Shown here piece by piece: positions 7,999 through 12,623 of a DNA stretch of 32,000 bases; position 1 is the first letter of the stretch, and the number at the start of each line of letters is the position of its first letter. Under the pieces are notes generated by a model. That model made no database searches and was not told the origin of the DNA. It saw nothing but the letters and a program-made list of their open reading frames with translations. This DNA comes from Wallemia ichthyophaga EXF-994. Taxonomy: Eukaryota; Fungi; Basidiomycota. A program made the translations under genes and the position numbers. Location: NCBI RefSeq assembly GCF_000400465.1, contig NW_008806275.1, positions 369,656 to 401,655 on the forward strand, written 5' to 3'.

Positions 7999-8481
7999 AT
8001 GAAATTAATTCGGTAAATCATATTTAATTTTTAAACTCAAATTAATTTATTCGCAGTTTCCTTCAGAAGCTAAATAATGAATCTGTGACGATTGAGTTGA
8101 AGAATGGTTCGATTGTACATGGTACTATGATGAGTGGGTTGCTGATTTCAACGAGTATTTCAAGTGGTATTGACACTTCCCCTCACAGACTGCGATCCCT
8201 CCATGAATGCCCACCTTCGTAGTGTTAAGCTCATCACGAGGAACCTTCCGCCTACAAACCTCGATACTATCTCCATTAGAGGAAACAACATTCGATACTT
8301 CATTCTTCCTGATTCCTTACCTTTGGATACTCTCCTTGTAGATGACGCTCCCAAGCCAAAAGTTAATAAGCGCAAAGAAGCAATCAAGGAAAGGTCAAAG
8401 TCTGTTAGAGGTTCTGGCCCTCAAAGAGGTGGTCCTAGAGGCGGTAGAGGTGGCCCTAGAGGTAGAGGTGGCCCACGTTAG
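7999..8481 (+). CDS. SMD1: small nuclear ribonucleoprotein Sm D1
   Basis: [43 protein letters not shown] plus RG/GR-rich tail; two GT-AG introns. Confidence 0.96.
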
Positions 8482-8535
8482 TATTATCCTATTTATTTGT
8501 GTACTTTTCTTCTTTTCTACCTTCTGCCATCTCCA

Positions 8536-8919
8536 ATGACTGGCTTGTCTAGATTCTTTGGATACACAGCCGCTTTAAGCTTGTTTTACTTTCTGTCCCT
8601 TTTCCATTTCATCAAAATCCCACTCATCGATCGCAGCACTTGTGATATCGCCCTACCTTTCGTAAGTAACATCACAACATGAAACACCCCAACAAACTCT
8701 CCCTATTAGATTCCGTGGTGGTTATTAGTCTCATTCGGTAGCTATTCTTTAGCCAGCATTGGCTTCGGTCTATTCACCTTCAAAGACTGTCCAGACGCGT
8801 ACACTGAGTTGCTTACTGTAAGTCCACTCAAATCCTATCAACGCCGTTTGTTAACCCTTTATCAGGAAATATCGCAAGCTAAAGACCACCTACGCTCAAA
8901 AGGTGTACATGTTGACTAG
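8536..8919 (+). CDS. DPM3: dolichol-phosphate mannosyltransferase subunit 3
   Basis: Three exons give MTGLSRFFGY..LPFIPWWLLVSFGSYSL..FTFKDCPDAYTELLTEISQAKDHLRSKGVHVD, the DPM3 signature. Confidence 0.92.
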
Positions 8920-8947
8920 ACGATACCAAGACAGCGATATTACAATA

Positions 8948-10057
8948 CTAAGATGACGACTTGCTTCTTATATGCCTACCATCATCCTTATCAGCTTCTG
9001 CAGCTACCCATATCCTCTTCTCCTTATGCATTTCCCGCGCCTGCTCTTTATTCTGTGCTATCTTCTGCGTAGATGGAAAATCCACATCCCAATACCCAGG
9101 CGGTGTTTTTGCACGTGGCCAATGCGATCTATGCCTTGAAGATCTGTCTCTATGTTCTTGTGCAGTTCCTTCACCAACTGAATTCCAGAAATCTCTACAA
9201 CAAAAACAATCACCGCCTATCATATGCTTCCTTTCCTCCTTATTTCTGACTGTCTCATTATACTTATAATTTAGACCTTTATTGTTGTCTGGGTTAATAG
9301 GGTATAACTTGTTAATTGATTGATTCTCATCAGTTTTTGGTATAGATGTTGCGTATCTTCCGCTACCTTTATTCTAAGGCTTCACTTAGTTAATTATAAC
9401 AAAGAAACTTCACCTTACTTTAAATGGATTTTGCTCGTGGTTGTTATCTGATTTGCGCCTCAATTTCCGAAGATCATCACCATTGAATTTCAATCTCTTG
9501 TTGTTATGATAGTCAAGATACTTTATTGAAGTCGGGGTGAGTTCATCATCTGAATCCCATTTAGCTTTCTTTGGAGGTGTTACGTTGATGTGTTTAGATA
9601 TCGCCTCTTTACGCTTAAATGGAGAAGCAGAAGTTGACTCTGTTGCTGAACTGGATGGTGATTGAGCTGTAGTTGAAGAAGAAGGCGAGCTTTCAAGGTT
9701 GTTGCTCGGTCTAAGAGGTTTACTCAGGTGTCGAGCGAGATTCGATTTATCTCGACTCAGTGAAAATGGTTCCCTGACCTCATCATCTTCATCGATAAGC
9801 AGCGAGTGTATGTAATTCTTTGATGGAGACGTAGACTTGGATTGCTTCTTCTCAAACCACCAAATTTTAAATTCCAGCCACGCCTTCTTATCATCATTAT
9901 ATTGCGCAACTAAATCATTATAAGACAACTGGAGCAACTCAAATCTAACCGAGAGATCCAAATGATCAGAATTATAGCAATTATAATTATTTTTATAAAA
10001 ATTATTTATTTTATTCGTTATTTCCTCCTCGAGTCGCTTTAGTAACTTGAAATCCAT
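8948..10057 (-). CDS. CTP1: Ctp1/Sae2/CtIP-family DNA end-resection factor
   Basis: ORF 9410-10057 (N-terminal coiled coil, S/T-rich linker) splices via a GTAAGG..CCTTAG intron into GRYA..INPDNNKG..VRNKEERKHMIGGDCFCCRDFW..SRHRSHWPRAKTPPGYWDVDFPSTQ (CxxC and RHR motifs). Confidence 0.9.
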
Positions 10058-10069
10058 CGTGGCTGCTGG

Positions 10070-10292
10070 TTAAGAAGAAGGATTGAGGCCTTGCGAGATG
10101 CCTTTAAATGCACCGTAAGTTCCCTTCCTTATTCCAGTGTTGGCTTGTTCAAAGTATTCTTGCACTGGATCGCCTTTACGCGGTACCTACGCATACGTCA
10201 GTTGGTCTCTGTCTGATAGCAATTCAGCATACCATTCTTGCCGTGGAAGCAGAAACAGCAGCCAAAAGTACAGCAACTTTAGTCAACCTCAT
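10070..10292 (-). CDS. 58-aa spliced small ORF with signal-peptide-like N-terminus (not in ORF track)
   Basis: ATG at 10292 (A at -3); 46-nt intron 10187-10232 (GTATGC..CTGAC..GTAG); product MRLTKVAVLLAAVSASTARMVPRKGDPVQEYFEQANTGIRKGTYGAFKGISQGLNPSS; stop 10070-10072. Confidence 0.65.
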
Positions 10293-10377
10293 TGTTGATG
10301 TTTAAAGAAATATGCCCGCGGTTGAATGAATACGCATTCCAATGCCGCGCATTTCTTGACCTGTACCGTCATTCCCC

Positions 10378-11019
10378 ATGGAATCGAATTATCCAAAGAT
10401 CGACCTTGAGTCAAAAGAACACTTGAAATTCTTAGAGGGATATTACAAGAATGAATTGTTTTCACAAGTTGATAGCAGCCAAGATGATAACGACGCGCTC
10501 AATTCACTGCTAAACACGTACTTCAACAAAACCTTCAGCTTGATACATCCAAATATTAAAATAAACGGTCAAAACTACTCAGACTTAAATTTTGATGATG
10601 ATGTCGAATTTGAACACTTTGACGATAAGCTGCGCTTACAAATGTCTGAATTAGACAGCAACATTGAACAATTACAGAACAGATTGGCCGAAAAGAGAAA
10701 GCTAGTGCCATTGGAATTGGAGGAATTGTTAACAAGACAATTAAAGAGGAAGAACACCTCAAATGTGCCTGATAAGGACCACCAAGATGGCGATGACGAT
10801 GTCAACGTCGATAAAGATCAACTTGACTTAACATTCAACAAGGACGGTCTTGAAGATATAGGCGTCAATCTTAATGACCTTTTAGCCGTGAGTTACGCGT
10901 ACATTCACGTGGTATACGCGTAATTTACTAACTTACCGTTTTAGAAATTACCACAACAAATATCAAAATTAGAGAGAACGAAGAACCTCAAAGATGACTT
11001 GAACTGTATAGAATCTTGA
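10378..11019 (+). CDS. NSL1: kinetochore Mis12-complex subunit Nsl1/Mis14-like
   Basis: PKIDLES..PNIKING..EHFDDKLRLQM..LAEKRKLVP pattern typical of Mis14/Nsl1; last intron 10888-10944, stop TGA 11017-11019. Confidence 0.75.
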
Positions 11020-11068
11020 TTTGTTTTGAAATTTGTATTATTTGTACTTTTATTTATTCTAAACGCGT
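10888..11068. promoter_or_regulatory. cluster of three MCB-type ACGCGT elements and one TCACGTG upstream of RHO4, partly inside the NSL1 intron
   Basis: ACGCGT at 10895-10900, 10916-10921 and 11063-11068; TCACGTG at 10905-10911. Confidence 0.4.
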
Positions 11069-11111
11069 CGTTCCCCGCGATCTCGCCTTCCTTAAAGTGA
11101 CACGATCACCT

Positions 11112-11873
11112 ATGAATAACACGTTACCTGCAGGTAGGAAACCTGATGTCAAGAAGAAGCTGGTTGTAACTGGTGATGGTGGATGTGGGAAGGTACGCTG
11201 GCTTAAATGCGCAGTGGAGTCGCTAACCCTAATCGATAGACGTGTTTGTTGATTGTTTACGCAGAGCATAGATTTCCTGAGGTTTGTTGGTTAGAATCAA
11301 GCAAGAATCATCTAACGAATCGTTAAAAGGAATACGTCCCCACTGTTTTTGAAAATTACGTCTCGTATCCAACATTTGATGGCAAGATAGTTGAGTTGGC
11401 GTTATGGGACACGGCTGGTCAAGAGGAATACGACAGGTTGAGACCATTGTCATATCCAGAATCCGATATTATTCTCATAGTTTTCTCGATTGATTACCCA
11501 ACATCTTTGGAGAACGTCAAGGATAAGGTTGGTGAAATGTTTACTACAGGACACCTCTAACTCGTCCATTAATCAGTGGTTCCCTGAAGTTTCTCACTTC
11601 TGCTCAGGAGTTCCAAGGATATTAGTCGGTACAAAGATAGATTTACGACAAGATCCAGAGACAAGAAGAATGTTAAGTATGCAAGGTTTGAAACCAGTAT
11701 CATACGAGCAAGGTGTCGCTGTATCTAAAGAGATCGGTGCGGCCAAGTACATTGAGTGCTCAGCGAAGAAATCTCAAGGTGTGATTGAACTGTTTGATCA
11801 AGCGCTTAAGGAATCGATGAAAGGCAAGCTGACTAAATTTGTGAAGAAGCGCAGGAATTGCGTCGTGTTGTAA
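11112..11873 (+). CDS. RHO4: Rho-family GTPase (Rho4-like)
   Basis: [60 protein letters not shown] and CAAX CVVL; three GT-AG introns. Subfamily assigned from the switch-region sequence. Confidence 0.9.
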
Positions 11874-11931
11874 TTTATTCCTAGATATCCTCCTTGTACA
11901 AACGCTTTCATCTTGATTGTTAAACTGTCCA

Positions 11932-12623
11932 ATGTTTATTCAATCACGCGAAATTTTAGATAAGAAGAGTCTCTTTGTTGCTTACTTGATTCCTGTTTCA
12001 TCTGATAAAGATGTGCGTCGCATAATGATGATTAGAAACCTCTGACATCACCAGATATCCCAAGCTAAACTTAAAATTAGACAGAGCCAGAGTAGCTCTC
12101 CTAGTCATTCCATTTCCGCCTACAGATTCGTTGGTCTTAAATCAAAGAAAATTGGCCTGAATCAGGACGACTTCACTGTCAAAACCGCTTACGATGACGA
12201 TGGCGAGAAATGGGCTGGAAAGAGAATCCTTGAGGTATTGGAGCAGACGTGAGTAATTTGTTTTGATAGCTTTGTTCTATTAATCGTTTTCAATCAAGTC
12301 AAACGCTTGACGCACTCATTGTCGTATCGCGCTGGTACGGCGGAATTATGCTAGGACCAGTACGCTTCCAGCATATAAAAGATCTAAGTCTAGAAGTTTG
12401 CAACGAGATGAAAAAGAATGAAGGGATGCGCGAGAGTTTTGAGTTGCTACAAGGCCTAGATGAAAGCATAGCAGATGTGCGAAGTAAATTAGGCATGGAG
12501 AACAAGCCGACATCCTATGATAGCATTGATTTCGTAAAATCACAGCGTCTAATCAAAGCTAGGAAGGGTACTTTAGACATTTTGAAGAAGAAATTGTCTC
12601 ATAAAGTGGAAAGTGCCAAGTAG
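11932..12623 (+). CDS. IMPACT/UPF0029 (Yih1 ancient-domain) protein without RWD domain
   Basis: Spliced MFIQSREILDKKSLFVAY..SHSISAYRF..YDDDGEKWAGKRILEVL..VVSRWYGGIMLGPVRFQHI. Confidence 0.85.

Follow-up and report, generated by a model that had tools for sequence, protein, structure and literature searches.

The stretch of DNA analyzed here, referred to below as the window, comprises 32,000 nucleotides (nt) of contig NW_008806275.1 of the basidiomycete Wallemia ichthyophaga EXF-994, and it carries, directly upstream of the gene for the DNA-end-resection factor Ctp1 (CTP1), a small open reading frame (smORF) that was read directly from the minus strand of the window and then translated. The smORF is spliced, encodes 58 amino acids (aa) and extends on the minus strand from an ATG at 10292 to a TAA stop codon at 10072-10070. 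Exon 1 (10233..10292, minus strand) has 60 nt, i.e., 20 codons counted from the ATG (MRLTKVAVLLAAVSASTARM), which specify an n-region, a 13-residue h-region and small residues at positions -3 and -1. The intron (10187..10232, minus strand) is 46 nt long, of phase 0 and bounded by GT..AG, with GTATGC at its 5' end and, 11 nt ahead of the 3' TAG, a branch-like CTGAC. Exon 2 (10070..10186, minus strand) adds 38 codons (VPRKGDPVQEYFEQANTGIRKGTYGAFKGISQGLNPSS) and the TAA (10072..10070). Without splicing, the smORF RNA would hit a stop after 22 codons. Between the smORF stop and the CTP1 start lies a spacer of 12 nt (10058..10069, minus strand; CCAGCAGCCACG), which gives an A at -3 of the CTP1 start; the CTP1 ATG (10057) is in the same frame as the smORF. 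A sequence-only reading of the window had described such an ORF, with an intron at 10232/10187, a hydrophobic leader and an end 12 nt before an in-frame CTP1, and reading and translating the sequence bears this description out.

Contigs that encode CTP1 homologues were fetched, the smORF was sought in them by tBLASTn, and two-exon models were then built. These contigs represent another W. ichthyophaga strain (L008 and L012), W. hederae (L003), W. mellicola (L002 and L013), a species of the W. sebi complex (two genomic Logan contigs, L010 and L011), a species nearer W. ichthyophaga (L009, a partial contig) and a distant relative (four metagenomic contigs, L004-L007, from Logan SRR27437231 and SRR23143848 and from ENA ERZ28602115 and ERZ27248804). 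In every fetched contig, tBLASTn places the smORF peptide between Mis14 and CTP1 and on the CTP1 strand, and the same-strand adjacency of smORF and CTP1 is kept in all taxa compared. The position of the intron is common to six taxa: it is of phase 0 and lies directly behind (K/R)M, after the hydrophobic stretch. The orthologous introns are 42-53 nt long, all of them with GT..AG boundaries and a CTRAY-like branch motif; in sequence, they cannot be aligned.

Exon 2 is under strong purifying selection. Within Wallemia, the proportion of nonsynonymous differences (pN) is ~0.1, that of synonymous differences (pS) is 0.69-0.78, i.e., saturated, and the ratio of the two substitution rates (dN/dS) is 0.05-0.07; the closest pair, W. 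mellicola and the W. sebi-complex species, differs in exon 2 at 10 synonymous versus 3 nonsynonymous sites. Because the synonymous sites of exon 2 are saturated, no extra constraint at the level of DNA or RNA is visible there. When W. ichthyophaga is set beside the W. sebi-complex species, smORF exon 2 shows 84% identity, compared to 71% for Mis14 and 66% for CTP1. Over five taxa, 19 positions of exon 2 are invariant, and the core reads PVQ(E/D)YF(E/Q)QA..G..KGT.G.FKG..Q. Exon 1 reaches only ~28% identity, yet its hydrophobicity is retained in the five taxa. The check across Wallemia by tBLASTn and dN/dS that the sequence-only reading had proposed thus came out in favor of a conserved smORF, with a spacer that keeps CTP1 in frame throughout the five Wallemia taxa, and the suspicion of a lineage-specific peptide was supported as well, the smORF being confined to Wallemia and one distant relative. 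The latter is very AT-rich, was encountered only in metagenomes, and has a CTP1 that is 44% identical to that of the window. Its CTP1 and Mis14 are intron-less, the smORF intron is kept, and the order Mis14-smORF-CTP1-LSM-Ras is preserved. The source of its four contigs may be an undescribed wallemiomycete lineage.

Splicing is documented by a short-read Logan contig of 2.4 kb (SRR23314750, here L001, with ends 1 and 2448) from a W. sebi-complex species. Aligned with the genomic contigs L010 and L011, L001 shows 99.7-100% identity, apart from five exact gaps. The gaps fall on the introns predicted for Mis14, the smORF and CTP1 and on two more in DPM3/LSM; L001 was therefore assembled from RNA reads. 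It carries a spliced 56-aa smORF product (P0001) that is identical to the model predicted from L010, so that splicing of the smORF holds in this relative, whose RNA-derived contig lacks exactly this intron. The contig is unbroken through Mis14 (minus), smORF, CTP1 and DPM3 (minus), with the smORF stop and the spacer retained. It is also unbroken over the divergent Mis14 promoter and over convergent gene ends, and overlapping separate transcripts would assemble alike. The contig is thus compatible with each of the three arrangements put forward in the sequence-only reading, namely a bicistronic mRNA, a long uORF and a start of CTP1 transcription inside the peptide gene. One end of L001 lies 58 nt past the Mis14 stop, ~29 nt before the ATG of the next tandem gene (86-nt spacer), and the other inside the LSM coding region. 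The former, a single observation, suggests that contig breaks can mark real transcript ends, and it may represent the Mis14 poly(A) site. A search for further RNA-derived contigs through CTP1 protein clusters returned L001 as the sole one.

Since five other taxa have the smORF with its intron in the same place, and since it shows strong purifying selection and is represented by spliced RNA in a relative, it stands far beyond chance. On balance, we consider it probable that the smORF is an independent, so far unannotated two-exon protein-coding gene of the Wallemiomycetes, whose transcription unit overlaps CTP1 through genome compaction.

The product belongs to no recognized family. A Pfam scan of the peptide (E up to 1) found no family, and a profile search of the PDB with the peptide gave no match. 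P0001 alone was returned by a word-indexed search of 5.8 billion protein clusters, in which the single peptide and a five-species profile were used, and exhaustive HMMER searching of 1.84 billion representative proteins found no homologue besides P0001; three repeat proteins matched by HMMER were rejected as compositional, their score being summed from many short stretches. JGI metagenome contigs, scanned with the peptide profile and a CTP1 profile, contained no relatives, and no smORF paralogue was found elsewhere in the window or in the fetched loci. Rfam had no match in window 8800-11200 (E up to 1). The smORF product is missing from every public Wallemia proteome in the searched collections, the annotated genes listed for the locus in W. 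ichthyophaga, in W. hederae and in W. mellicola pass over the smORF, and among ~15 billion predicted proteins the sole copy stems from the transcript contig. Gene callers missed the smORF because its intron splits the ORF and because it is wedged between tightly packed genes.

Across taxa, the smORF precursor measures 55-66 aa. According to a rule-of-thumb scan, all five leaders begin with a positively charged MR or MK, continue with an uncharged run of 13-17 residues and have, at -3 and -1, small residues that precede a basic one (STA before R, ASA before K, ISA before K in two cases, and CYS before K). The N-terminal 16-20 residues, directly behind which the intron lies, thus appear to be patterned like a cleavable signal peptide. 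That the leader drifts freely in sequence, with hydrophobicity kept, fits a signal peptide too, and the leader features in five taxa agree with the hydrophobic, signal-peptide-like leader proposed from the window alone. The remaining 39-47 residues contain no Cys and are hydrophilic (grand average of hydropathy, GRAVY, -0.8 to -1.0), basic (isoelectric point, pI, ~9.4-9.9) and glycine-rich (8-15%). AlphaFold2, run with a two-sequence alignment, models, at low confidence (predicted local distance difference test, pLDDT, 67; predicted template modeling score, pTM, 0.30), a leader helix (residues 2-18) followed by another helix (residues 25-51); the model is too weak to carry a search by fold. 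The peptide of ~40 residues that cleavage would leave is probably helical.

The downstream gene has an exon 1 of 213 codons (9419..10057, minus strand), a 45-nt intron (9374..9418, minus strand; GTAAGG...CTAAG...TAG) that is absent from L001, and an exon 2 (8948..9373, minus strand) that encodes CxxC and RHR motifs and the SAE2/CtIP C-terminal domain and ends with a TAG stop at 8950..8948. At 48.1 bits (cut-off 19.8; E 2.8e-12), its product of 354 aa matches the Pfam family SAE2/CtIP C-terminus (PF08573), and its identity to Ctp1-domain proteins from W. ichthyophaga is 99%, which justifies the name CTP1. The exon 2 motifs GGDCFCCRDFW (CxxC) and SSRHRSHW (RHR) are invariant in a four-species alignment. 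On the other side of the smORF, a divergent intergenic region of 85 nt (10293..10377) with two CGCG cores leads to a Mis14/Nsl1-like kinetochore gene (10378..11019, plus strand; exon 1 10378..10887, intron 10888..10944, exon 2 10945..11019). Beyond the CTP1 stop follow DPM3 (8536-8919, plus strand) and an LSM/Sm-like gene with an RG-rich tail (8164-8481, plus strand).

The genome of W. ichthyophaga has a size of 9.6 Mb and is almost three quarters coding (PMC3849046); the window has a G+C content of 40.5%, compared to 45.35% published for the genome (PMC3849046). In the window, 92 nt separate the Mis14 stop from the next ATG and 54 nt the LSM stop from the DPM3 ATG, and the divergent starts of Mis14 and the smORF are 85 nt apart. 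The stops of DPM3 and CTP1 lie only 28 nt apart on opposite strands, and the 3' untranslated regions (UTRs) of the two genes must therefore overlap in antisense orientation. Convergent coding sequence (CDS) ends at this locus are 28-50 nt apart, and in the corresponding 20 kb of W. mellicola, tandem genes leave 19, 40, 59 and 86 nt between their CDSs. The claim that a terminator and a promoter do not both fit into 12 nt is upheld, and it holds almost equally for the neighbouring tandem gaps. Overlapping transcription units are therefore the apparent norm here. The idea that the spacing at the smORF-CTP1 junction is a special regulatory device is weakened accordingly, with tandem neighbours 19-92 nt apart, convergent ones 28-50 nt apart and gene models that fuse neighbours. 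The junction looks like the extreme of a general gene crowding, not like a special device.

At this junction, the spacer measures 12 nt in W. ichthyophaga and W. hederae, 9 nt in the L009 species, and 6 nt in W. mellicola and the W. sebi-complex species. The stop is TAA in all five Wallemia taxa, and the base after it is C, T, C, A and A. The distant relative has a TGA stop and an AT-rich spacer of 71 nt, which puts CTP1 out of frame and holds several stops in the CTP1 frame. Near-zero spacing and a shared frame are therefore traits of Wallemia and not needed by the gene pair.

CGCG/MluI cell cycle box (MCB)-like cores (ACGCG/CGCGT) are 2-6 fold denser in the Mis14-CTP1 interval than in its surroundings in all six taxa. 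Their positions are not conserved; in the window, they lie at 10293-10377 and at 10180-10200. A perfect ACGCGT occurs in the smORF intron of strain L008 (TATGCGT in the window strain) and, in the distant relative, upstream of the smORF. In fission yeast, ctp1 is listed among the MBF-dependent genes. The cores are a lead for a CTP1 or Mis14 promoter and nothing more, and the notion of a conserved CTP1 promoter of this type inside the smORF was dropped, as the positions differ between taxa.

How the two genes probably work side by side can be outlined as follows. The small smORF product would enter the secretory pathway and act outside the cytosol, either secreted or associated with the cell wall or a lumen. 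The smORF mRNA would end inside CTP1, no more than ~100 nt into its coding sequence. Two overlapping AATAAA motifs at 10005..10015 (minus strand), 55-65 nt past the smORF stop and inside the CTP1 codons for NKIN, constitute a candidate poly(A) signal of this mRNA, although they could be a chance product of AT-rich Asn/Lys codons. The surrounding 9960-10020 (minus strand), an almost pure A/T run with AATAAA twice and TATAAA, encodes NKINNFYKNN(F/Y)NCYNS, the most conserved N-terminal stretch of Ctp1, and an A/T-rich coding stretch is found in the relatives as well. Productive CTP1 mRNAs, in turn, would start inside the smORF gene, in its intron or in exon 2. Read-through RNAs with both ORFs probably exist too and would make little Ctp1, and transcriptional or translational dampening of CTP1 could be a side effect of this arrangement. 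The smORF AUG is in a strong context, with A at -3 in all six taxa, and the sole other upstream AUG lies in the smORF frame. Reinitiation 6-12 nt after an ORF of 56-58 codons is expected to be poor, following the GCN4 paradigm. Because of the strong smORF AUG and poor reinitiation, a dicistronic RNA would be a poor template for Ctp1, and CTP1 mRNAs likely start within the smORF. Whether a leader from within the smORF would be free of upstream ATGs (uATGs) proved an uninformative test: exon 2 and spacer are without ATG in W. ichthyophaga, and an out-of-frame ATG is present in W. mellicola and L009. A separate 58-codon ORF with a GTG start (10289-10465, minus strand) lies antisense to the 5' end of Mis14, and its TGA overlaps the smORF ATG (ATGA); it probably exists by chance. 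It includes an ATG in the 85-nt intergenic region, which would be a uATG if the smORF transcription start site (TSS) lay upstream of it.

Several other explanations have to be weighed. That the smORF is a chance ORF and no gene, the sequence being only CTP1 promoter or 5' UTR, would agree with its absence from the annotated Wallemia proteomes. This explanation is ruled out by the conservation of the ORF, its intron position and its splice signals in six taxa, by a dN/dS of ~0.06 and by the spliced RNA, and we give it practically no probability. A different matter is a functional dicistronic mRNA, or a long conserved upstream ORF (uORF), in which translation of the smORF, perhaps with recruitment to the endoplasmic reticulum (ER) by the signal recognition particle (SRP), keeps Ctp1 low, and in which Ctp1 is made only via rare termination-reinitiation or leaky scanning. 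The preservation of a spacer of 6-12 nt in five Wallemia taxa, always a multiple of three in length, speaks for such a coupling, as does L001, which runs uninterrupted from the smORF into CTP1, yet stops after Mis14 and hence does not pass through every junction. The same short-read continuity, however, extends over the Mis14 promoter and the convergent ends, and the distant relative separates the two ORFs by 71 AT-rich nt. Moreover, by what is known of reinitiation, a strong AUG followed by 56-58 codons would leave almost no Ctp1, and a ribosome trap needs neither strong purifying selection on the peptide nor a secretion-type leader. The very low dN/dS and the leader argue that the peptide is made for its own sake, which weakens the suggestion of a long uORF limiting Ctp1 translation as a sole role. 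In Agaricomycetes, read-through polycistronic transcripts with lowered expression of the downstream gene are on record, but the genes transcribed together are transcribed on their own as well (PMC4503453). In sum, we regard a functional dicistronic mRNA or regulatory uORF as rather unlikely. The stricter version, a true dicistronic mRNA in Wallemia on which the ribosome ends at the UAA and restarts 6-12 nt further on for Ctp1, with the in-phase spacer under selection, appears decidedly improbable; if true, it would amount to operon-like translational coupling of two unrelated proteins in eukaryotic cells.

The shared frame also raises the question of a fusion of signal peptide and Ctp1, by read-through of the stop or by an alternative intron that removes it. 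The in-frame relation is found in five Wallemia taxa, a hypothetical GTGCAT...CAG intron of 48 or 51 nt in the window would keep the frame, and in W. hederae the NCBI model P0003 links smORF exon 2 with CTP1. Against this, all five Wallemia taxa use UAA, the least leaky stop, and not UGA or UAG; the RNA contig keeps stop and spacer; and in the distant relative the frame is lost and the spacer holds several stops. The GTGCAT/CAG pair is not conserved, the equivalent splice in W. mellicola being out of frame (read by eye), and the W. hederae model is partial and relies on a GTCAGA donor, which W. ichthyophaga lacks. An alternative intron removing the smORF stop was thus rejected, as neither conserved nor present in the RNA contig. 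To send a DNA-end-resection factor to the ER would also be biologically senseless. The sequence-only reading had already called a read-through fusion unlikely, and given the UAA of the five Wallemia taxa and the loss of frame in the distant relative, we deem a fusion by either route highly improbable. Concerning the peptide itself, the N-terminus might be an uncleaved signal anchor, which would make the product a single-pass membrane micro-protein of the ER, Golgi or plasma membrane with a soluble tail of 40 residues. The h-region is indeed very hydrophobic in the W. sebi-complex species, W. mellicola and the distant relative (14-17 residues, maximal Kyte-Doolittle 11-residue mean 3.4-3.6), and AlphaFold2 folds residues 2-18 into one helix. 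Runs of 13-17 uncharged residues are, however, short for a membrane span, small -3/-1 residues followed by K or R fit signal peptidase in every taxon, and the leader drifts freely (28% identity), unlike most functional membrane helices. A signal anchor is therefore a minor possibility next to a cleaved leader.

Some points weigh against an independent gene with a secreted product and a separately transcribed CTP1. The function of the peptide is a guess, and no homologue of known function was found; the signal-peptide call relies on a rule-of-thumb scan, and the structure model has low confidence (pLDDT 67). The continuity of L001 over the smORF-CTP1 junction fits a bicistronic RNA equally well. 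Transcript ends and the internal CTP1 TSS are inferred, and when a CTP1 promoter element inside the smORF gene was sought via the CGCG/MCB cores, none was positionally conserved. Finally, although the Wallemia spacer has changed in length at least twice, it is a multiple of three in each of the five taxa, which by a crude count would happen in ~1 of 9 cases. This pattern is unexpected under pure neutrality and is left without explanation if the smORF is simply an independent gene, though the evidence is thin.

The crowding at this locus has left traces in public annotation. The NCBI models of W. ichthyophaga assembly GCA_004918415.1 (L012) fuse same-strand neighbours at L012 1-6614, 7447-9680 and 11139-11931; the latter two intervals correspond to window ~10378-12600 and ~8160-8920, respectively. 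DLIC, a methyltransferase and a P-type ATPase are run together in a model of 2880 aa; another model, of 533 aa, unites a Ras/Rho GTPase with Impact_N and spans the Mis14 position; and a 137-aa model joins LSM and DPM3. These chimeras are explained by the tiny tandem spacers. In the reference annotation of W. mellicola CBS 633.66, CTP1 is split at its intron into EIM24187.1 (226 aa) and EIM24186.1 (90 aa). The 'partial' CTP1 model P0003 of W. hederae (L003 3001-4246) begins inside smORF exon 2 (RQVTRKEDPVQEYFEQANTG) and splices out the smORF stop together with the spacer and CTP1 codons 1-5, using the GTCAGA donor; it is a chimeric prediction.

Among known systems, the closest arrangement is that of Agaricomycete read-through units, which were described from long reads in a study that reports the polycistronic phenomenon as declining outside Agaricomycetes and in whose text Wallemia does not occur (Gordon et al., 2015, PLoS One, PMC4503453). 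Alike are the basidiomycete host, same-strand neighbours without room for a terminator and a promoter, continuous RNA coverage and, as an expected consequence, lower expression of the downstream gene. Here, by contrast, RNA continuity comes from a short-read contig alone, the upstream partner is a micro-gene of 58 codons, and the spacer measures 6-12 nt. Ctp1 itself is an ordinary member of the Ctp1/Sae2/CtIP proteins, with the Pfam SAE2 C-terminal domain and the CxxC and RHR motifs as known, and only its upstream neighbour is unusual. Conserved-peptide uORFs, such as the arginine attenuator peptide of arg-2/CPA1 or the conserved-peptide uORFs of plants (CPuORFs), stall the ribosome in cis, usually have 20-50 codons and lack a signal peptide. 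They resemble the smORF as small ORFs directly upstream of a main ORF with a conserved amino acid sequence; the smORF differs in being spliced, in its secretion-type leader and strong UAA, and in having a normally spaced neighbour in the distant relative. If transcribed together with CTP1, the smORF would act like a long uORF of this class.

With fungal small secreted proteins (SSPs), the smORF product shares a signal-peptide-like leader, small size, restriction to a lineage and the lack of a Pfam domain. A high cysteine content marks most of the SSP families described (PMC8596622, PMC4759460). The mature part of the smORF product, of ~40 residues, is by contrast without Cys. A resemblance to hydrophilins in small size and hydrophilic, glycine-rich composition only, in a xerophilic and halophilic genus, is a lead and not a finding. 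Hydrophilins and glycine-rich stress proteins such as Hsp12 and Sip18 are cytosolic and have no leader, whereas the smORF product has one, and there is no sequence similarity between them. The smORF product is best filed as an orphan, cysteine-free small protein with a secretory-type leader; it founds a new family, and nothing about the locus is categorically new.

The smORF adds a conserved, strongly constrained gene to Wallemia and illustrates how intron-split micro-genes evade both eukaryotic gene predictors and prokaryote-style ORF callers; in addition, the locus flags several chimeric or split gene models in public Wallemia annotations. The junction of 6-12 nt with a low-abundance repair gene provides a natural test case for resolving overlapping and read-through units and the translation of a downstream ORF, a resolution that work on basidiomycete polycistronic transcripts left open. 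As a peptide family of the most halophilic and xerophilic fungi known, the smORF products are candidates for a role in cell-surface or stress biology.

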